Shown here: positions 10,831-64,000 of the stretch, piece by piece
Numbering within the stretch: the first letter of the stretch is position 1
Layout: the number at the start of each line of letters is the position of its first letter
IMG/VR virus record: IMGVR_UViG_3300026521_000003
Span: 225,881 to 289,880 of that record
Direction: 5' to 3' (one strand)
Length of the DNA stretch: 64,000 bases
The notes under the pieces: generated by a model
Seen by the model: only the letters and a program-made list of their open reading frames with translations
The model's database searches: none
What the model was told of the DNA's origin: nothing
Program-made: the position numbers and the translations under genes

Positions 10831-10850
10831 ATTATTTCCTTTTTTTCTTT

Positions 10851-10887: not shown

Positions 10888-11205
10888 ATGAAAAGAAAAT
10901 GTGATATTTGTAATACTGATTATTATGTTAAAAAATCTGATTTAGCTAGAGGATGGGGATTAACATGTAGTAAATCTTGTGCAGCTAAAAAAAGAGAAAG
11001 ATCTAGGAATAACTATGATGAAACAACAGTTAAAATCAATAACCTTAAAAGAAAATTATGGTTTAACAAATATAGAAGTATTGAATTAGAACTCAGAAAG
11101 AAAAATAAAAATATGACCGATATTGAAATTTGGGTTGAAATGTATAAGATTACAAATGATGAGATATTTTTATTTGATGAAATAAAAGATATTTTCATTT
11201 TTTAA
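10888..11205 (+). CDS. Zinc-binding protein with C-terminal DIFIF tag
   Basis: CDIC...RGWGLTCSKSCA; ends LFDEIKDIFIF*. Confidence 0.8.
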   Translation: MKRKCDICNTDYYVKKSDLARGWGLTCSKSCAAKKRERSRNNYDETTVKINNLKRKLWFNKYRSIELELRKKNKNMTDIEIWVEMYKITNDEIFLFDEIKDIFIF

Positions 11206-49313: not shown

Positions 49314-49922
49314 ATGGCTGATTATATTAGAAAGGCAGACCAAGAAATACCATTAACTCAAGAACAAGTTATGGAGATGGCTAGGTTAATGAAACGACCA
49401 ACAGGTTTAATGAGATTTATCCATTATATCGATATTGATACGGCTGATGGTCCTATAAATTTTGGTAAAGTTATTAAAGATTTTCAGTTTGATATGTTAA
49501 AAACCTTTCAAAATTATGATCGATCAATTATTTTGGCATCTCGTCAGATGTCGAAGACTACACTTGCAGCTGTATATCTTCTTTACGAGGCTACCTTTCC
49601 AAAATCAAAAGGGGATATTCTTATAGTTGCACACAAACAAGGTCACTCTATGGAAGTTCTAAAAAGATTAAGAGATATGTATTTCTCTATGCCAATGTGG
49701 ATGAAAGCTGGAATGGTGAAAAATAACGAAACATCTATAACTTTTGATAATGGTATGAGAGTTATTGCTGAAGCTACGACTGCTAATGCTGCTAGGGGTA
49801 AATCTCTAAAAATTGTATATTGTGTAGATGGAGAAACAAAGATAACAGTTAGAAATAAAATAACAAAAGAAATAAGAGAAATTGATATTCAGGATTTATA
49901 TTTAAATGATGAATACAAGTAA
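49314..49922 (+). CDS. terL: Large terminase (T4 gp17-like) fragment 1: ATPase N-part fused to split-intein IntN-1
   Basis: Q motif (KDFQ), Walker A ILASRQMSKTT, NETSITFDNGMRV, ARGKSLKIVY, then CVDGETKITV... (intein block A) at 49821, 33 aa to stop. Confidence 0.9.
   Translation: MADYIRKADQEIPLTQEQVMEMARLMKRPTGLMRFIHYIDIDTADGPINFGKVIKDFQFDMLKTFQNYDRSIILASRQMSKTTLAAVYLLYEATFPKSKGDILIVAHKQGHSMEVLKRLRDMYFSMPMWMKAGMVKNNETSITFDNGMRVIAEATTANAARGKSLKIVYCVDGETKITVRNKITKEIREIDIQDLYLNDEYK
49821..49922 (+). mobile_element. Split intein N-fragment 1 (33 aa)
   Basis: CVDGETKITVRNKITKEIREIDIQDLY resembles short IntN fragments of atypically split terminase inteins (C-x-x-G-(D/E)-T...I-x-D-L-Y). Confidence 0.85.
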
Positions 49923-49924
49923 TT

Positions 49925-49932
49925 TGTATAAT
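49925..49932 (+). promoter_or_regulatory. sigma70-type -10 element driving the homing endonuclease
   Basis: TGTATAAT 2 nt after the terL-1 stop; AAAGGA SD before ATG 49958. Confidence 0.55.
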
Positions 49933-49957
49933 TATATTTAAAAAAGGATTTATTTGT

Positions 49958-52093
49958 ATGATTGAATTGATAGATTATAAGTCAAATCCTGAAAAAATTA
50001 GAGTAGAACTCTTAAATAAAATCAATAAAAAAATTTCTATACAGACTAAAATATTTTCAAATGATTTAAAAAATCAAATTTGTATTGATTATGATGAAAT
50101 TGAATTTAAAAAAGCTTTAGCTAGATTCATCCACAATGATAAAATTAAACAATGTCCATACAATGAATGTGGATTAGAAAGAAAATTTTTAAGTGTTGCT
50201 AATGGTTTTGCTAAGGGGTGTGGGAAAAATCATTCTACTAAACTCACCAATTTAGAAAAGTACGGTGTTGAAAATCCTCAGCAGAATAAAGAGATTAAAA
50301 ATAAAACTAAAGCAACAAATTTAAAAAAATATGGTGTAGATAATCCTGCTAAATCAGAAATCATTAAAGAAAAAACTAAAGAAACATATTTAGCTAAAAC
50401 GGGCTATAATTCACCTTTAGAAAATCCAGACGTTGTTGAGAAAATTAAAAAAACTAATTTAGAAAAGTACGGTGTTGAAAATCCACTAGAATCTACTAAG
50501 GTAAGAGAAAAATACAAGAGTACTATGCTTGAGAGATATGGTGATTCTATACCTATGCGATCAGAATCTATAAAAGATAAGTACAAGGAAAATATGCAAA
50601 AGAATTTTGGTGTAGATCATTACAACCAAACATCAGAATTTAAGAATGATAAAAAAAGAAAATATTATTATAGAAAATTAATGTCTGATAGCTATCCTGT
50701 AAAACCATTATTTACCGTAGATGATTATATCAATTTAAGTGATAGTTTTGATAAGCTTAAATGGCAATGCAAAACATGTAATAGTGTATTTGATGCACAT
50801 AATCATAATAAAGTTATACCTCGATGTTTAACATGCTATCCCTTAATATTTGATGGTGTATCATTATTAGAAAATGAAGTAGTAACTTTTATTCAGAGTT
50901 TCCAAACTGATATTTTGATGAATGATAGGATATTGATTGCTCCGTATGAACTAGATATTTTAATACCCTCAAAAAATCTAGCTATTGAATTTAATGGTTT
51001 GTACTGGCATTCAGAATTAAATGGTAAAGATAAAAATTATCATATTAAAAAAACAATTAAATGTACAGAAAAAGGTGTGCAACTACTTCATATCTTTGAA
51101 GATGAATGGGTTTTTAAAAAGGAAATAGTAAAATCAATAATTAAAGCTAAATTGGGTTTATTCACTAATAGAATATATGCTAGAAAATGTATTATTGAGG
51201 AAATCGATAATAACACTAAGGATATTTTTTTAGAAGAAAATCATATTCAGGGAACTGATATTTCAAAAGTCAAACTAGGGTTATTTTATAATAATGAGTT
51301 AATCCAAGTTATGACATTTGGTCATAGTAGATATAATAAGAATTTTCAATATGAGATGCATAGATTTGCATCAAAACAAGGTTATCAGATTATAGGTGGT
51401 GCAAGTAAATTATGGAAATATTTTATTAGAAATTATAATCCTGAATCGGTAATTACTTATGCTGATAGAAGATATTCTAATGGGGTCACTTATGAAAAAA
51501 TAGGTTTTAGGAAAGCAAGAGAATCAAACCCTAATTTTTTTATAATTAATAAAGGTGTAAGAGAGTCACGATTGAATTGGCAGAAGCATAAACAGAAAGA
51601 TAAATTAGAAAAATTCAATCCTGAACTAACAGCATGGGAAAATATGCAGATTAATGGGTATGATAGAATTTGGGATTGTGGTAATTATGTTTTTGAATGG
51701 AAAAATCAAAAGGTGATTACAAAAATGAATAAAGAAGAGAAAAAATATTTTGATTTAGTTAGAATAAATTTAACTGATGATTTGATACCTTCACATTATA
51801 AAGATGGGAAACTAGATAATCCTATGTATGGCCATTGTCATCATGCTTCACTAGCATTATATGATTTATTAGGTGGAAAAGAAGCGGGTTATAAATTAAG
51901 AAAAGCAATAGACGATGACAATATCATCCATTATTGGTTAGAAACACAAGATGGTATTATAATAGATCCAACAGTAGAACAATATACTGATTTAGGAAGA
52001 AAGCCACCGTATGATAAGCAAGTTAAGAAAGGGATTAGTTATAGAAGAACAAATTCATCGAAGCTATTAGTCTCTAAAATAAAACAGTTATAA
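49958..52093 (+). CDS. Free-standing Vsr/Hef-like (PD-(D/E)xK) homing endonuclease with 23-aa repeats and a C-terminal transglutaminase/papain-like domain
   Basis: TNLEKYGVENP repeats; CKTC/CLTC zinc motif; YELDILIPSKNLAIEFNGLYWHS and LLHIFEDEW; IYARKC...IWDCGNYVFEW; tail NPMYGHCHHAS...HYWL...IIDPT. Confidence 0.8.
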   Translation: MIELIDYKSNPEKIRVELLNKINKKISIQTKIFSNDLKNQICIDYDEIEFKKALARFIHNDKIKQCPYNECGLERKFLSVANGFAKGCGKNHSTKLTNLEKYGVENPQQNKEIKNKTKATNLKKYGVDNPAKSEIIKEKTKETYLAKTGYNSPLENPDVVEKIKKTNLEKYGVENPLESTKVREKYKSTMLERYGDSIPMRSESIKDKYKENMQKNFGVDHYNQTSEFKNDKKRKYYYRKLMSDSYPVKPLFTVDDYINLSDSFDKLKWQCKTCNSVFDAHNHNKVIPRCLTCYPLIFDGVSLLENEVVTFIQSFQTDILMNDRILIAPYELDILIPSKNLAIEFNGLYWHSELNGKDKNYHIKKTIKCTEKGVQLLHIFEDEWVFKKEIVKSIIKAKLGLFTNRIYARKCIIEEIDNNTKDIFLEENHIQGTDISKVKLGLFYNNELIQVMTFGHSRYNKNFQYEMHRFASKQGYQIIGGASKLWKYFIRNYNPESVITYADRRYSNGVTYEKIGFRKARESNPNFFIINKGVRESRLNWQKHKQKDKLEKFNPELTAWENMQINGYDRIWDCGNYVFEWKNQKVITKMNKEEKKYFDLVRINLTDDLIPSHYKDGKLDNPMYGHCHHASLALYDLLGGKEAGYKLRKAIDDDNIIHYWLETQDGIIIDPTVEQYTDLGRKPPYDKQVKKGISYRRTNSSKLLVSKIKQL
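50246..50650 (+). repeat. About 6 tandem 23-aa repeats (TNLEKYGVENP-type) in the homing endonuclease
   Basis: Near-identical DNA copies a(c)(c/t)aatttagaaaagtacggtgttgaaaatcc at 50246 and 50453. Confidence 0.85.
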
Positions 52094-52109
52094 AGGTTTT
52101 ATAAATTAT

Positions 52110-52117
52110 AATAAATA
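52110..52117 (+). promoter_or_regulatory. T4-type late promoter (AATAAATA)
   Basis: AATAAATAAAAGAAAAAGGATTAAAACT-ATG(52138). Confidence 0.6.
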
Positions 52118-52137
52118 AAAGAAAAAGGATTAAAACT

Positions 52138-53445
52138 ATGAGAATTAAAGATCTTATAAATGAAGTTAATATCGATGATTATGAAGATTTAGCACATTAT
52201 AAAAGTCCATTCGTAGATAATAAGGGAGATTATAGCATTCCATTTCAATGGCACCGCAAAAAAGCAACTCCAGATGAACACGAGATGACAAGACTTAGAA
52301 ACTTAGCTAAACTTGCTTTTAATAATTCATTTAAAAGTAGATTAAATAAACTTAAAAAGGCATTAAAAGAGAAAAATTTCTTAAAAATGCAAGAACAATT
52401 AGAGTACTTATACACATATAAATATGATTTAACGGAGTTGATGATTGATGGAAAATTAACTAGTGAATATAAAAAAGATTTTGATTATATGAAAATGATA
52501 ATCGATAAAAAAATTAATAAAATCAATAAAATACTTGAGTATAATCAAAAATTATTCAATGATGTATTTGGTAAAAAAAGTTATAAGAGAACTGCTAATT
52601 TTTATTCTAAAACGGATACATTTACTATAACAACATATAAAAAGCAGACAGAAAGATTCCATGAAATACTCAAACGTTTAAAACGTATTCCTCATGAGTT
52701 AGCTATATTGGATAAAAAATTTAATTCGGTTGATAATAAAGAAAAATTAGAATTATTAAAAAAAGAAAAAGAAAATCTTGTTAAATGGATTGAAAAATAT
52801 AATGATATACTTAAAGCTATGGTTGTTAGAATTGAAGTTCAAAAGCATAGCAAAGGTAAAACAAAAATATTTAATTATGATGATCCTTATACGTTTTTTA
52901 ATGCAATTGATGAAGAAATGCCATTATTTTATGATTCTGAAAGAAAAAAGAAAATACCATTAAAAAATTTGGATTTAGTTGATGAAGTATTTCATGAATT
53001 AAGATCAATAAAAACTATAGCATTAGGTAAGAAAAGCTTAAAAAGCTTAATCCCTCTTTCAAAAAGACCAAGTAGTTTAGATAGTTTAGATCCTAAAAAA
53101 CGAAAAACACGTACGATGAAAATTAAAGATTTAACGTATGAAAAACAGAAAAAAGAAATGGATTCCAAAAAAGAATCAGAGAAAGATTTAGACGGATTAT
53201 CTAAAATATTCGATAAAGGTACTAAGATTATAGATAAGAAATTAAAAGTAGGTATAGAAAGTTTGGGTGATGGTAAGATAAAATTAATTGATAAGGATGG
53301 TAAGCAACTTAAACCATTTGATCTAAATATTCAATATATTAAATGGCTTACAGAGGATGAAAAAATGTCAGGAATTATCGATATTAAAAACACTACACAA
53401 AAAATAGCATCAATTATAGATGATCTAGAAATTATTAAAAAATAA
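52138..53445 (+). CDS. Basic hypothetical protein with leader MRIKDLINE, putative virion-associated
   Basis: 435 aa Lys-rich; CTS-like leader; own late promoter. Confidence 0.8.
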   Translation: MRIKDLINEVNIDDYEDLAHYKSPFVDNKGDYSIPFQWHRKKATPDEHEMTRLRNLAKLAFNNSFKSRLNKLKKALKEKNFLKMQEQLEYLYTYKYDLTELMIDGKLTSEYKKDFDYMKMIIDKKINKINKILEYNQKLFNDVFGKKSYKRTANFYSKTDTFTITTYKKQTERFHEILKRLKRIPHELAILDKKFNSVDNKEKLELLKKEKENLVKWIEKYNDILKAMVVRIEVQKHSKGKTKIFNYDDPYTFFNAIDEEMPLFYDSERKKKIPLKNLDLVDEVFHELRSIKTIALGKKSLKSLIPLSKRPSSLDSLDPKKRKTRTMKIKDLTYEKQKKEMDSKKESEKDLDGLSKIFDKGTKIIDKKLKVGIESLGDGKIKLIDKDGKQLKPFDLNIQYIKWLTEDEKMSGIIDIKNTTQKIASIIDDLEIIKK

Positions 53446-53473
53446 CTTAGAATCTGTCTAAGGTTTTTTATTT
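53446..53473 (+). terminator. Possible weak intrinsic terminator
   Basis: CTTAGA-ATCTG-TCTAAG hairpin followed by GTTTTTTATTTT right after the stop; AT-rich stem. Confidence 0.35.
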
Positions 53474-53504
53474 TAGATAGGATTAGAGAATAAATAAAAA
53501 TAAA

Positions 53505-53840
53505 ATGGGGTTTTTAATGAAGGAAATTTTAGAGTGGGAAGTACTTACTCCAGATGGATGGAGTGACTTTTCAGGTATTATTGAATTAGAGAAGAAAGTA
53601 TTAACAGTTAAATTTCAATCTGGTAAAGAATTGACTGGAAGTGAGACTCATAGACTTTTATTAAAAAAGAATGAATTTATTGAATTGCAGTATTTAATGC
53701 CTAACGATACAATCATTTCAGAAGATGGAACAGAAATAGTTGAAACGATTGAAGAGGGTTCGATACAAAAAGTTTACGATCTGGTTGAAGTTGAATCTGA
53801 ATATCATAGATACTTCACTAATGGACTTATTTCACACAAC
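53505..53840 (+). mobile_element. Split intein C-fragment 1 (about 108-112 aa)
   Basis: Ends in canonical His-Asn followed by Cys(+1); contains blocks B, F, G. Confidence 0.88.
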
Positions 53841-54290
53841 TGCGATGAAATGGCATTTATACCAAATAGGATTCAAGATGAATTTATGGCTGGTACTGCT
53901 CCTGCTCTTTCAGCAACTCGAGGTAAAATGATTGTTACTTCTACACCAAATGGTTCAAGAGATTTATTTGCAAAGATTTGGCAAAACTCTGGTATGGAAT
54001 GGGATAAGAAGGAAATGACATATCTTAGAAAAAACAAACCAAAAAATGAGTTTGAACCTCTTTTTGTACCTTATTGGATAGACCCAACTAAAAATACCCC
54101 TGAATGGATTGAACGAGAAAAGAAAACATTGGATGATCCAGTTAAATTTAAAGTTGAGTTTGAATGTCTTGACGAAGAAACTAAGGTTGATGTTTATGAT
54201 GAGATAACTAATGAATATAAAACTTTAACCCTGAAAGAAATAAAAGATATTTTAGACAAGGATTTACTAAGTAAAAATCTATTAGTTTAA
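53505..54290 (+). CDS. terL: Large terminase fragment 2: IntC-1 + ATPase C-part (Walker B) + IntN-2
   Basis: WEVLTPDGWSDFSGI...SETH (block B)...VYDLVEV (block F)...YFTNGLISHN|CDEMAF (C at 53841); GKMIVTSTPNG (motif C); KVEFE|CLDEETKV (C at 54165). Start may be ATG 53517. Confidence 0.9.
   Translation: MGFLMKEILEWEVLTPDGWSDFSGIIELEKKVLTVKFQSGKELTGSETHRLLLKKNEFIELQYLMPNDTIISEDGTEIVETIEEGSIQKVYDLVEVESEYHRYFTNGLISHNCDEMAFIPNRIQDEFMAGTAPALSATRGKMIVTSTPNGSRDLFAKIWQNSGMEWDKKEMTYLRKNKPKNEFEPLFVPYWIDPTKNTPEWIEREKKTLDDPVKFKVEFECLDEETKVDVYDEITNEYKTLTLKEIKDILDKDLLSKNLLV
54165..54290 (+). mobile_element. Split intein N-fragment 2 (41 aa)
   Basis: CLDEETKVDVYDEITNEYKTLTLKEI follows EFE, then stop; partner IntC not in window. 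Confidence 0.8.
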
Positions 54291-54316: not shown

Positions 54317-55180
54317 ATGAAACTTAGTACACACCCTCATTTAATTAATAAACCTACTTTAGAAAAAACAGATAAGCATCTTATAATGATGCAATCTGTT
54401 AAACACTTTGATAGACATAATATTGAAACATTAGAAGAATTATATGAAATAGTTTCTAGAAACGTAGTTTATGCTCCTATTTATTGGAAAAGAAATTATA
54501 GAAAAATTGATAATGCAATACTTTCTAAGATTGATTTATTGATATATGATTCTGATGAAGGTGATACTGCTGATGAAATTATAGACATGCTTGGTGAAGT
54601 TGAAACAATGGTGTTACAAACATCAGGCTGGACAGAAGAAAAAGAGAAATATCGTATTTTTATACCGTTAGAAAAACCAATAACCTTTGAAAGTCCTGAA
54701 GAATATACATATTTTTATAGATGGTTGGGTGATATTATTGGTTTGAATTATGATACTAGTACTACCGAATGTGGGAGAGGTTATATAGGATTAGCTGGAA
54801 AGAGAGGTTTTAAAATAGAAGGTGAGCGTCTGAATCCTTTGCCAGCTTGGAAAAAAGAAAAATACAATTATAAGAAAAAAGCAAAAAGAGAACGTCTTAG
54901 AAACTATATAAGATCTATAACCCAACGAGAAATGTTAGAAGATAGTGGTTATACAGTTCCATCACCCCACGATTTAAGATTTAATGATAGAAAATTTAAT
55001 GAATTGGCATTAGAATGTGGGGCTGGTAAAAACTATAAAGCTGTTTTTAAAATTTTAGGATATTGTAAATTTCGTGGTTTAACAGCCTCCGAAGCCGCAC
55101 AGGCTGTAATGTTGTTAAATTTAGGTAATGAATATAATAATGAAAAAGAACTTATTAGAAGATATGAAAAATTGGGATAA
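54317..55180 (+). CDS. AEP-superfamily primase/prim-pol-like protein
   Basis: LLIYDSD (DxD), LQTSGWTEEKEKYRIFIPL (like YTTxSH...YRxxIPL), YD...GRG; C-terminal PriCT-like helical domain. Confidence 0.5.
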   Translation: MKLSTHPHLINKPTLEKTDKHLIMMQSVKHFDRHNIETLEELYEIVSRNVVYAPIYWKRNYRKIDNAILSKIDLLIYDSDEGDTADEIIDMLGEVETMVLQTSGWTEEKEKYRIFIPLEKPITFESPEEYTYFYRWLGDIIGLNYDTSTTECGRGYIGLAGKRGFKIEGERLNPLPAWKKEKYNYKKKAKRERLRNYIRSITQREMLEDSGYTVPSPHDLRFNDRKFNELALECGAGKNYKAVFKILGYCKFRGLTASEAAQAVMLLNLGNEYNNEKELIRRYEKLG

Positions 55181-55208: not shown

Positions 55209-55769
55209 ATGACATCATTTAAAGATTATTATCATGATCCTTTTAGTATCCCTAGTACGGAAGATAAAAAATTTATTATTGGTCCTATAAAGCCAATGTA
55301 TGCATTACTAATAGATTCAATGGGATATAATAATATTGATGTTGATGAACTGTATGACCCTACTAATTTTAAAAAAGAGTACGAACAAGCTAAAAAAAAT
55401 CTTGAAGTGTATATGAAAGATTTGCTTATTAAATCTCAATTAATGGGTTTTTCAAAAAATGCACTTACAATAATTGTTGCCCAAAATAATGATTCTGTGT
55501 ATGTATTGAAAGGTGAGTTTGTATTACGGGTGATAAATGACTTTAAACTGAATAAAATTAAATTAGCTGATAAAACTTTTAAAGAATTTAAAGACTTTGT
55601 AGAAAATAATACAGATTACTGGTCTAATTCATTAATTGAAATAGATAAAATAACTATTAATATTGGAAATTCGCTTGAGGATTATCTGTTTTTAATGGAT
55701 CGATATGAGATTTATGATGAAACATTTAAGGAACGTTTAAAAACTGCACAGGATATTTTTATATTTTAG
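55209..55769 (+). CDS. DIFIF-tagged protein
   Basis: Ends ERLKTAQDIFIF*. Confidence 0.85.
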   Translation: MTSFKDYYHDPFSIPSTEDKKFIIGPIKPMYALLIDSMGYNNIDVDELYDPTNFKKEYEQAKKNLEVYMKDLLIKSQLMGFSKNALTIIVAQNNDSVYVLKGEFVLRVINDFKLNKIKLADKTFKEFKDFVENNTDYWSNSLIEIDKITINIGNSLEDYLFLMDRYEIYDETFKERLKTAQDIFIF

Positions 55770-55777
55770 GAGATAAA

Positions 55778-55987
55778 ATGAATGAATTGAAAGAGATTAT
55801 ACGAGTTCAAAAAGAGATAGAACGATTGGATGAAACCCGAAAAAAGCTTATTGATTATGCTATAAAAAATAAAGAGAAAGAGCTTATGAAACTATCACAA
55901 AAGAATAAACAATTAGAAGAAGAGAATAGACGACTTAAATCTGATATAGCAAATCTAAATCAAAAAATTAAAAATTTAACACACTAA
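55778..55987 (+). CDS. Small coiled-coil protein
   Basis: 69 aa; AGGAG SD; heptad pattern. Confidence 0.75.
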   Translation: MNELKEIIRVQKEIERLDETRKKLIDYAIKNKEKELMKLSQKNKQLEEENRRLKSDIANLNQKIKNLTH

Positions 55988-56003
55988 TAAATGAGAGGGA
56001 ATT

Positions 56004-56681
56004 ATGAGCGGCTGGTTTGATTCTTATAATAATAAAATTGATAGAACAATCGATAATGACAATATTTCATATACTAGTACTTCATTTGAAACTAAAGGAG
56101 AATATACTACTAGTACCACTATTAAAATGCCCACCGTAGAAGTGTTTTTAAAAGCATTAGATGCTTCTAATAAAAAGCTTACAATTCCTCTTAAACAAAT
56201 TATTGATGACTTAACAACACAAGAATTAAATTCTGTTATAGGGCTTTCATCATACAATGCTACAACTCCATTGGGTCATGCAATCAATGCTATGAATGTA
56301 GAAGCTGTTGAGTATTTATTATCATTGTGTGTTGACACTAACTTACATGGACCTAACCAAAAACATATATTGCAAGAATTATTAAATTCAAATGCAACAG
56401 AAAAAAGAATAAGAATTTTAGAAAAGGTTCTTAAAGAGTTTTCTGGCTTTATACCATTAGAACCAAATTATGATGGTCGTTTTTATAGTACGAAGTATTT
56501 AATTGTATTAATCAATAATCGTGCAGTTATGAGAGATACCATTTTTAATATTTATGATAGTTTTCCTCCAAAGCAACGGAAGGAATTAGTTAAGAATTGT
56601 AAAGCGATGCAAGAAATAGCTATAGAGAAAAAAGATTTTGAAATTCTTCCAGATGAAGTAAAGAATATTTTTCTTTTTTAG
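56004..56681 (+). CDS. DIFIF-tagged ankyrin-like protein
   Basis: TTPLGHAINAMNVEAVEYLLSLCVDTN; ends FEILPDEVKNIFLF*. Confidence 0.85.
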   Translation: MSGWFDSYNNKIDRTIDNDNISYTSTSFETKGEYTTSTTIKMPTVEVFLKALDASNKKLTIPLKQIIDDLTTQELNSVIGLSSYNATTPLGHAINAMNVEAVEYLLSLCVDTNLHGPNQKHILQELLNSNATEKRIRILEKVLKEFSGFIPLEPNYDGRFYSTKYLIVLINNRAVMRDTIFNIYDSFPPKQRKELVKNCKAMQEIAIEKKDFEILPDEVKNIFLF

Positions 56682-57685
56682 AATATAAAAATTTCTCTAA
56701 CTTCAGGAAGTAATTTTAAAACATCTTCATAATATTCCCAATCAGTTTCTTTGGTTAAGACCTCTTTAAATTTATCACTTTTTTCCATTAGTGCAATAAC
56801 TAGATCTTCCCACATACCTAAACCTCGATTATCAACTCTTTTGACTAAGCCTTTAGCTAGTTCTTCCCATTCGTTATCGATAAATGTTATATTATCTAAA
56901 AATATATCTTTTTTATCTGGGAAAAACGATGCCAATTCTCCTATTAAAGAGTCACCGGTTGTATCTTCAGAGAATCCTATATATCTAACTAATTTTTTTA
57001 TGATTTTATCATTATTTTCAGCTATAATCCAAACCGGCGGAATTGTTTGGTGTTCGGCTATGTTTGAAGGCCTTATAATTGCATACTTCATATAAAGATC
57101 CAATATTTCTTCATTAATAATTTTTTCATCTAAATTATCATATAATATCTTTTGTACAATTCTTCCTTTGAATCCTCCGTCTTCAAAAGTATTCCAAGGA
57201 TAATTGTCTGCTCCATATTTTTTTATAAGCCATTCCATTGCGGGTATATTTCTAAACTTTCCAAATTCTTCAAAAATTTTAATATGGTCAAAATTTTCTA
57301 ATTTCCCTTCTTTATCCAGTTGAGTTAATTTACCTACCGTAAATGGACTTGAAAAAGATATTTCATTTAAGTCTTCGTCAATTGCCCACTCTTTAAGTTC
57401 ATCACTAAAATGCTCAGGTTTCACTTTTTTTAATTTTGCTGCTGAAATGGCATATCTTCCTGTTGGAGTTGATGAAATAGATTGTCCAGAATTACGAATC
57501 GCATCTATAATCATTTCGCTAGTTTTATTAAATAATTCTTTTCGAGCAATAGATTTATAATTATTTCCTTGGTCAAAAAACGATATAGCACTTTGTTTGA
57601 TACCAATCCCATCTTCTCTTAATTTTTCCAACCATTTCATAATATTCTTTCTTGCACTTAATGAGAGATTTAATGATAAAGCCAT
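56678..57685 (-). CDS. DIFIF-tagged protein (minus strand)
   Basis: Ends LKLLPEVREIFIF*; late promoter AATAAATA at 57705-57712 and AAGGA SD. Confidence 0.88.
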   Translation of the reverse strand: MALSLNLSLSARKNIMKWLEKLREDGIGIKQSAISFFDQGNNYKSIARKELFNKTSEMIIDAIRNSGQSISSTPTGRYAISAAKLKKVKPEHFSDELKEWAIDEDLNEISFSSPFTVGKLTQLDKEGKLENFDHIKIFEEFGKFRNIPAMEWLIKKYGADNYPWNTFEDGGFKGRIVQKILYDNLDEKIINEEILDLYMKYAIIRPSNIAEHQTIPPVWIIAENNDKIIKKLVRYIGFSEDTTGDSLIGELASFFPDKKDIFLDNITFIDNEWEELAKGLVKRVDNRGLGMWEDLVIALMEKSDKFKEVLTKETDWEYYEDVLKLLPEVREIFIF

Positions 57686-63466: not shown

Positions 63467-64000
63467 ATGGCTAAATTAAGAAACATTTTTAGTAAACTTA
63501 ATACGTTTGAAGATAATAAAGCAGAATATTTTGCTGAACAACTAATTAGAAGTACTTCCTTAATGGAAAGTAGTTTTCCAATAGAAATTGTCGAGGATAA
63601 ATTATTTGAAACTGCAATGAGTTATGAAACTAAAAAAGAAGCTTTGCTATTTTTATCAATGGTTGATGAAAAGTTAGAAGAAGGGTTTGTTGATAGTATT
63701 AAAAAAGCAGGAAAAGCTGCATGGGATGGTGCTAAAAAGGTTGTTAAAAAAGTAGTAGATAAAGTTAAAGATTTATGGAATGGTCCCGTTGTTTCGTCTA
63801 TTAAAAAATGGAATATAGCCGTTAATAAAATTGCTGACAAATATGAAGGGTTAGAAGAATCAACAATACCTATGCTAACACAAGAATATTTAATTGAGGC
63901 TGAAGAACCAAAAGAAGAACCAAAAGAAGAACCAAAAGAAGAACCAAAAGAAGAACCAAAAGAAGAACCAAAAGAAGAACCAAAAGAAGAACCAAAAGAA
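63467..64000 (+). CDS. 5' part of a gene running off the right edge (not in ORF track)
   Basis: MAKLRNIFSKLNTFEDNKAEY...LEEGFVDSIKKAGK...LIEA then EEPK repeats; frame open to 64000. Confidence 0.8.
   Translation, partial: MAKLRNIFSKLNTFEDNKAEYFAEQLIRSTSLMESSFPIEIVEDKLFETAMSYETKKEALLFLSMVDEKLEEGFVDSIKKAGKAAWDGAKKVVKKVVDKVKDLWNGPVVSSIKKWNIAVNKIADKYEGLEESTIPMLTQEYLIEAEEPKEEPKEEPKEEPKEEPKEEPKEEPKEEPKE
63902..64000 (+). repeat. Perfect 12-bp tandem repeat (GAAGAACCAAAA; EEPK), at least 8 copies
   Basis: Read directly; continues beyond the window. Confidence 0.95.

Follow-up and report, generated by a model that had tools for sequence, protein, structure and literature searches.

A large terminase probably divided among at least three genes by two split inteins in a metagenomic phage

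How does a phage package its DNA if the gene for its large terminase, TerL, is broken into pieces that lie kilobases apart? The question is raised by a 64-kb stretch of DNA (hereafter the window), the last part (225,881–289,880) of the 289,880-bp metagenomic viral contig IMGVR_UViG_3300026521_000003, also known as Ga0256828_1000001. The window has a GC content of about 27%. Two of its open reading frames (ORFs), fragments 1 and 2, carry parts of a terminase ATPase followed by a split intein's N-terminal portion (IntN), and fragment 2 also opens with a C-terminal intein part (IntC). We consider it probable that they are two of at least three genes for one T4-type large terminase, joined by two split inteins after homing-driven fracture. 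Fractured genes that carry atypical TerL split inteins are a known kind, to which this locus belongs; what distinguishes it are the number of pieces (at least three), the far-apart halves at the second fracture and a lineage-wide polymorphism over three insertion sites.

Where do terminase and intein meet? All parts lie on the plus strand. Fragment 1 (49314–49922, 202 aa) opens with TerL extein 1 (49314–49820, residues 1–169), the N-part of the ATPase with Walker A SRQMSKTT, which ends ...KSLKIVY. It continues into the 33-aa IntN-1 (49821–49922 including the stop), which starts at C170 and reads C-V-D-G-E-T-K-I.... Between the stop codon of fragment 1 and the start of fragment 2 (53505–54290, 261 aa) there are 3,583 nt. 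Fragment 2 is made up of IntC-1 (53505–53840, 112 aa, with blocks B (T-H), F and G and the end ...GLISHN), extein 2 (53841–54164, 108 aa, residues 113–220, with Walker B CDEMAF and TSTPNG, ending ...KFKVEFE) and the 41-aa IntN-2 (54165–54290 including the stop), which starts at C221 and reads C-L-D-E-E-T-K-V-D-V-Y-D.... Neither fragment contains a frameshift or an internal stop. An earlier sequence-only reading had delimited the same two ORFs, with an IntC of about 110 aa and a spacing of 3.6 kb; its coordinates are exact, and the translations confirm C170 plus 32 residues and C221 plus 40. Since the relatives of fragment 2 begin at its second methionine (MK.I.EWEV), the true start may be 53517, leaving 108 aa for IntC-1.

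Are the exteins parts of one terminase? Fragment 1 has family matches to Terminase_6N and to phrog_5989 ‘terminase large subunit’ (E 1e-36). On the TerL of Pseudomonas phage PA5oct, tblastn places the exteins base-for-base adjacent, at 128885–129385 and 129386–129658; extein 1 matches residues 14–180 (36% identity) and extein 2 residues 181–271. Such agreement goes well beyond chance. When they are aligned to PA5oct, 121Q and RsoM2USA, Walker A SRQMSKTT comes from piece 1, TSTPNG comes from piece 2, and Walker B with the catalytic glutamate (IVY-CDE) spans the predicted splice junction. Against four intact or near-intact jumbo-phage TerLs, the join KIVY-CDEMAF is aligned with SLVYLDEMAF. The same join occurs ready-made in P0048, an empty-site allele that is 96% identical to fragment 1 and, in the part they share, 83% identical to fragment 2. 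Here both exteins are contiguous (...KIVYCDEMSF..., KSLKIVYCDEMSF), with IntN-2 still at the C-terminus. P0336 reads ...KFVYVDEMAF... at this first site, likewise without an intein there. We conclude from these two empty alleles that site 1 is a genuine presence/absence polymorphism whose junction was exactly predicted. The sequence-only reading had assigned the pieces to a T4-type large terminase, had proposed that joining KIVY to CDEMAF rebuilds Walker B and had suggested a comparison with intein-less terL orthologues. The family matches and the adjacency on PA5oct bear out the first, P0048 and the alignment to intact TerLs agree on the second, and in the comparison the exteins abut exactly.

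Is the intein at this site complete? C170 (Cys1) follows directly upon the last extein residue, at the point where intact TerLs continue. The IntN-1 tail recurs in about eight fragment-1-like clusters of relatives and is missing in P0048. IntC-1 contains the residues of a class-1 intein, namely block B S-E-T-H49, V-Y-D92-L and S110-H-N112, followed by C113 (+1); H49, D92, S110, N112 and C113 are invariant across the 30 homologues in our alignment and profile of fragment 2. The IntC-1 profile matches PDB entry 6DSL_B (CatC) over residues 4–111 (E 2.9e-14, 30% identity) and, further, the gp41-1 intein (E 1e-9) and VidaL (entries 6QAZ and 6VGV). The AlphaFold model has a mean predicted local distance difference test score (pLDDT) of 71–95 per 10-residue block over IntC-1 residues 11–110, and the orphan extein is poorly modelled. 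The best fold matches of the IntC-1 model are VidaL, gp41-1 and Cat, with a template-modelling (TM) score of 0.76 to 6DSL_B, and the 50 fold matches listed are all inteins or intein-like HINT domains. Queries of the PDB with the short IntN sequences returned nothing significant. With lengths of 33/112 aa for intein 1 and 41 aa for IntN-2, both inteins are ‘atypically’ split. Judged by residues, profile and fold, intein 1 is a complete atypically split class-1 intein; the short IntN, the long IntC and the homology to CatC accord with the original claim of such an intein at Walker B.

What, then, is the tail of fragment 2? Its C221, T226 and D232 are invariant in the 30 relatives. It is about 44% identical to the IntN of the second piece of another split terminase, L347 (below), and about 33% identical to IntN-1, both values being read from translations. 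The IntNs found at site C in Vibrio phage K469 and in PA5oct-like phages are its homologues too. A strain 93% identical to the window is present in a second sample (Ga0256837_1000041), and against it omega is 0.06 for IntN-2 and 0.13 for IntC-1. That the tail is an IntN, as first read from the letters, is thus upheld by its conservation and by its position at E/C-x-F (the slash marks the insertion point), a site used likewise by many other phages.

An IntN requires a partner, and it is here that the evidence runs against us. The sequence-only reading had predicted that the nuclease domain with IntC-2 is not adjacent, and indeed neither an IntC nor a nuclease piece lies next to fragment 2. The search covered 92 kb of this phage and a further 29 kb in the 93% relative, about 121 kb in all; a promoter-motif scan for more of the contig yielded just 12 kb of new sequence. 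Neither IntC-2 nor a nuclease was found in the window (tblastn with the PA5oct and phiW-14 TerLs, an H-N-[CST] regular expression over all ORFs, profile hidden Markov models (HMMs) run on six-frame ORFs), in the 20 kb upstream of it (L514/L515, profile HMMs) or at 155–163 kb of the contig (L152, profile HMMs). The Terminase_6C-type, RNase-H-like nuclease domain is absent from the 92 kb of this phage searched. In the 93% strain, neither a second IntC nor the nuclease domain turned up in the DNA downstream of fragment 2, followed for 39 kb (29 kb past the end of our contig), and in the relatives fetched there was neither within 10 kb on either side of fragment 2. A further point on this side is that fragment 2, with its order IntC–extein–IntN, would cyclise if the two inteins cross-react. 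At about 33% identity between IntN-1 and IntN-2, orthogonality is plausible.

Broader searches were no more productive. An alignment search for loci related by the nuclease domain returned only PA5oct-like sequences among its best 80. A protein search with the same domain gave 1133 matches, and the 120 listed are 47–65% identical to the PA5oct nuclease domain. An exhaustive profile search of representatives found IntC-plus-nuclease proteins of roughly 360 aa, such as piece 3 should be, in about 47 clusters (at 50% identity), none linkable to this lineage. Two degenerate DNA patterns for Y-[YF]-T-N-G-x-x-S-H-N-C-x-F gave at least 120 matches, and this contig is absent among the matches listed. 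Homing-endonuclease paralogues, used as markers, showed no second copy on the contig among the best 80. If the partner of IntN-2 is present, its distance exceeds 39 kb on the downstream side or 69 kb on the upstream side. Such distances have a parallel in a 306-kb relative, where a TerL piece of 250 aa with an IntC sits at about 170 kb and fragment 2 at about 230 kb. From the conservation of IntN-2 and from homologous systems that are complete, we infer that a third piece, IntC-2 with the nuclease domain, exists elsewhere in a genome exceeding 300 kb.

Could the enzyme do without it? Possibly only fracture 1 is spliced and the resulting ATPase-only product works with a separate nuclease that carries no IntC, IntN-2 being retained as a tail or adaptor. 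In its favour, no IntC-2 turned up in the roughly 121 kb searched, and nuclease-only proteins of 226–263 aa do occur among the representatives. Against it, IntN-2 retains Cys1 (C221, invariant) and evolves under strong purifying selection (omega 0.06), and dozens of lineages pair the E/C-x-F site with IntC-plus-nuclease partners. We regard this arrangement as unlikely.

Might the intein parts instead only dock, so that the pieces assemble non-covalently and no peptide bond is made? Non-covalent assembly has a reported precedent in the fragmented NrdA of Aeromonas phage Aeh1 (PMC3045599). Remnants that only dock could lose their catalytic residues, yet Cys1, the block B His, the block G His-Asn and Cys+1 are invariant in the 30 relatives, and Cat (6DSL), which among solved structures is the nearest relative, splices actively and fast. 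Docking alone is thus quite improbable.

Or are the fragments decaying relics of an invaded terL, with a different, intact terminase packaging the DNA? Most of the genome lies outside the DNA searched, which leaves room for one. On the other hand, the exteins differ from those of the 93% strain by 57 synonymous and 0 nonsynonymous changes (0/33 in extein 1, 0/24 in extein 2) and have no frameshifts. The architecture is kept down to about 50% identity: about 50 clusters (250–320 aa, 50–72% identity) cover at least 94% of fragment 2. Nor was an intact TerL of the lineage found when the empty-site allele P0048 was used to query a 5.8-billion-protein collection, with candidates of 175–556 aa; the nearest intact proteins are only 35–38% identical. 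We give this possibility very little weight. That errors of assembly or gene calling, or a chimera, have broken a single terL is hardly credible, even though the contig is metagenomic and has a tandem repeat at its end, since the sequence is 100% identical in the independent Logan, ENA and JGI assemblies, the layout recurs in the 93% strain from another sample, and the gene is broken just where canonical intein boundaries and an endonuclease gene of 2.1 kb lie.

The repeat itself (window 63890–64000) consists of perfect 12-nt tandem copies of GAAGAACCAAAA, coding EEPK. As the contig ends inside it, the assembly probably broke there. A scan for the repeat, made to test whether the start of the contig continues the window, matched at the end only. 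In the relative, the repeat-bearing gene is a 454-aa protein, followed by a 1103-aa ORF.

If a terminase split by two inteins is thus the best explanation, how would it be put together? Piece 1 would supply the N-part of the ATPase with IntN-1, and piece 2 IntC-1, the middle of the ATPase and IntN-2. IntN-1 would dock into the nearly complete HINT fold of IntC-1, and class-1 splicing (Cys1, block B Thr/His, block G His-Asn, Cys+1) would link KIVY to CDEMAF. A second, presumably orthogonal pair would link ...KVEFE to the C-x-F of the nuclease piece. The two reactions, sequential or parallel, would make the ATPase domain whole again and add the nuclease domain to it. The fractures probably arose when free-standing homing endonuclease genes inserted into mini-inteins; the Vsr-like endonuclease gene would remain in fracture 1, and a later rearrangement would have parted the halves of fracture 2. 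The sequences show what the exteins and intein parts are and exactly where they end, that the catalytic residues are kept under strong purifying selection, and that the layout is widespread; that both pairs splice and that they are orthogonal, as well as where piece 3 lies, we infer.

How does this compare with what is known? Fractured genes, among them a phage terminase locus, have been described with Vsr-like homing endonucleases as genes ‘fractured in two’, with gaps of 27–51 nt between the N-part and the endonuclease gene (Dassa et al. 2009, PMC2677866). Fracture 1 conforms to that description, as the sequence-only reading had proposed: an N-part with IntN, a 35-nt gap, a free-standing Vsr-like endonuclease gene and IntC with the C-part, all on one strand. 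It departs from it in an extra ORF of 435 aa and in belonging to a gene in at least three pieces. Fracture 2 does not have this layout. No endonuclease gene or IntC piece lies within 10 kb of it, and fragment 2 is followed, 26 nt on, by a gene (54317–55180) that is primase-like (phrog_2135, E 9e-13), as had also been claimed.

Natural atypical split inteins have been called ‘rare’ in a review, in which the AceL-TerL/GOS-TerL family has an IntN of 25–37 aa and an IntC of 104 aa. Cat (6DSL), the active fast-splicing intein to which IntC-1 is closest, is an engineered consensus of AceL-TerL and GOS-TerL. Our inteins share with this family the TerL host, the short IntN (33 and 41 aa) and the long IntC (about 110 aa). 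Unlike it, the lineage uses three TerL sites (GK/T, Y/CDE and E/C-x-F), two of them within the same enzyme. The solved Cat chain continues ...SHA/CE, which is compatible with the E/C-x-F site of IntN-2; the Walker B site of intein 1 differs from the site implied for Cat (C-extein C-E...).

A compact three-piece parallel in architecture is L347 (IMGVR_UViG_3300034104_002534; 6.2 kb, GC 0.30). Its piece 1 ends ...VVDE/C plus IntN and is followed by a homing endonuclease gene, an IntC (...SHN/CAFIDN...SQE/C plus IntN), another homing endonuclease gene, and an IntC (...SHN/CDADF) with the nuclease. The order of parts is that of our reading, at 40% identity for piece 1 and 35% for piece 2. It differs in that the three pieces and two endonuclease genes are packed within 4.4 kb and that its first intein sits two residues later (VVDE/CAF versus VY/CDEMAF). 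In L193/L194 three IntC-bearing pieces are adjacent, the last with the nuclease domain; L283 is split at E/C-x-F with an endonuclease in or beside the gap; P0059 has a mini-intein in cis at site C; and P0262 combines three cis inteins with one split intein.

Among cultured phages, two kinds of split TerL that had gone unrecognised consist of two pieces each. In Vibrio phage K469 (OZ195916, L007:1-3154) and many near-identical relatives, ...QEME/C plus IntN is followed by an IntC ending ...FHN/CSF with the nuclease. In the 653-aa ‘terminase large subunit’ of K469, what is in fact encoded is the ATPase domain with a short IntN and, joined to these in frame, a GIY-YIG endonuclease; IntC and the nuclease domain make up the ‘hypothetical protein’ (401 aa) that comes next. 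The site is that of IntN-2, but there are two adjacent pieces only. The annotated 585-aa TerL of Delftia phage phiW-14 (NC_013697) opens with an IntC, ...GVASHN/TTT; the matching ...RQMGK/C plus an IntN of about 42 aa is encoded by a 155-aa ORF (L002:1358-1825) that is missing from the feature table. These ORFs make phiW-14 a cultured phage with a TerL split at Walker A, again, unlike the window, into two adjacent pieces only.

The Walker A site (GK/T) is also the third of our lineage. There the intein is in cis in P0336, P0337, P0343 and P0346 and split in others; some relatives therefore need three trans-splicing reactions. About 40 clusters of 230–260-aa proteins cover some 28% of P0048, and those examined (L444:3456-4097 and the 250-aa and 238-aa pieces of L186 and L188) open with an IntC, with the junction ...SHN/TT in L444:3456-4097. 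In L444 a DUF7487 endonuclease gene follows fragment 2 on the opposite strand. In our literature searches, only two-piece TerLs were found described. The sequence-only reading went too far in calling the need for two trans-splicing events unusual: TerLs that need two or three, or that carry up to four inteins, are frequent in metagenomes. What is uncommon here is the large distance between the pieces. Two TerL fragments of relatives are interrupted by about 310–350 nt, L093:6522-7438 (fragment 1, after residue 44) and L298:1277-2281 (inside fragment 2); a group I intron might account for this, or an insertion of another kind.

What would such a terminase mean? If splicing occurs, nature has here an enzyme whose assembly depends on two independent protein trans-splicing reactions, and in relatives on three. 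In the laboratory, IntC–target–IntN constructs are engineered for protein cyclisation (SICLOPPS). Fragment 2 has this very topology, the difference being that its halves come from two different inteins. If splicing is real, the phage must therefore have solved orthogonality within one intein family. The roughly 47 IntC-plus-nuclease clusters, together with the three TerL sites, amount to a large untapped pool for protein-labelling tools. A bolder proposal, of which we are doubtful, is that in this lineage of about 300 kb the motor is obligatorily made from three to four polypeptides, with genes tens of kilobases apart in different genome modules, by mutually orthogonal inteins of one atypical split family. 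Were it true, dispersal might be more than debris left by homing and could be a timing or quality gate, terminase forming only once every one of the separately regulated modules is expressed; orthogonal short-IntN intein pairs could then be drawn from this lineage as a natural source. Automated annotation gives such pieces wrong names or passes over them, as in K469 and phiW-14, which affects terminase-based phage phylogeny and estimates of genome completeness.

What lies between the fragments? Beginning 35 nt past the IntN-1 stop codon, a 711-aa ORF (49958–52093, plus strand) matches phrog_3339 ‘homing endonuclease’ (E 9e-139), which settles the claim of an endonuclease gene here, as well as DUF7487 (E 8e-29), the restriction-endonuclease (REase)-like family MTES_1575 (E 1.5e-3) and, weakly, I-Bth0305I (3R3P, E 0.095). 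The protein, of the Vsr-like/EDxHD type, has repeated KYGV.NP DNA-binding modules (DUF7487), a Vsr/REase-like core and extra YunG-like C-terminal domains, and the same family adjoins TerL pieces in other phages. Its dN/dS (ratio of nonsynonymous to synonymous rates) of 0.13 against the 93% strain suggests that it is still functional. A Lys-rich passenger ORF of 435 aa (52138–53445, plus strand) follows, with no family in Pfam or PHROG searches; it is 84% identical in the 93% relative and is not found between the fragments in more distant relatives.

The intergenic region before fragment 2 (53446–53504, plus strand) contains a weak, AT-rich hairpin with a T-run (CTTAGA-ATCTG-TCTAAG, read from the sequence, at 53446–53474), upstream of ATAAATAAAA at 53490. 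The promoter-like motif noted there in the sequence-only reading is this element, and it recurs before about ten other genes. It may serve as a promoter or leader motif. A consensus terminator scan did not call the hairpin, and sigma-70 promoter and terminator scans did no better than on shuffled sequence. A recurring leader, ATAAATAAAAG-(A)5-7-GGA, occurs at window positions 10837, 48784, 52111, 57691 and other sites; on either strand it stands about 6–8 nt before the start codon of the first gene in a transcription unit. The leader is similar to a T4-late-like promoter with a ribosome-binding site, and in IMG/VR the same 19–21-mer often stands close to terL genes of other AT-rich phages.

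Two contigs tried as related DNA proved not to be: 3300026521_000471 (224 kb, same sample) has zero proteins in common with the window, and L145 (172 kb, from the sample of the relative) shows no similarity. A relative of fragment 2 without IntC-1 lies on a 2.5-kb contig, L516 (QMNM01000352.1), binned in a metagenome-assembled genome of Candidatus Cloacimonadota; its isolate and scaffold names include ‘Guay’, a weak hint on host or habitat.

The window holds a second peculiarity. Of its 87 ORFs of at least 90 aa, 41 (at 10888–47920 and 55209–57685) share a C-terminal tag, roughly (F/Y)-L-P-x-(E/D)-(V/I)-K-D-I-F-(I/V)-F-stop. At the DNA level, conservation extends over roughly the final 60 nt, and the protein bodies are mostly unrelated; ankyrin repeats are present in two of ten tested. 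Past the end of our contig, the 93% relative has the tag as well (L321:14337-15410). It has the look of a common signal for sorting, packaging or degradation, or perhaps of a truncated F-box-like motif, and may be more novel than the inteins.

Other genes may be fractured as well. A 201-aa ORF that ends at window position 220 (L514:9014-9619) opens with a short canonical IntC, ...FYCNGILTHN/SAAGD..., and its remainder resembles the C-part of a DnaB/gp41-like helicase via L446:700-1575; Pfam recognizes no family in either ORF. If it is indeed part of a helicase, it would represent a second fractured gene, with a conventional split (long IntN, short IntC). In the 93% relative, some 19 kb further on than our contig reaches, recA/uvsX is fractured (L321:10001-13058), in the order RecA_N with a long IntN, a DUF7487 endonuclease gene on the opposite strand, and a short IntC with the probable RecA C-part, in which Pfam found only the intein end. 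In the more distant relative L446, recA is intact. The cargo of the lineage is unusual too. By eye, a 594-aa ORF (L323:13943-15727; no Pfam match on record) resembles a TonB-dependent-receptor-like outer-membrane protein. Finally, the Pfam-flagged part of this cargo (L319:6763-7890, L093:9535-15438 and L514:1429-2319) includes a flagellar hook-associated-like protein, P-II and ABC-transporter genes, and a homologue of the anti-Pycsar protein Apyc1.

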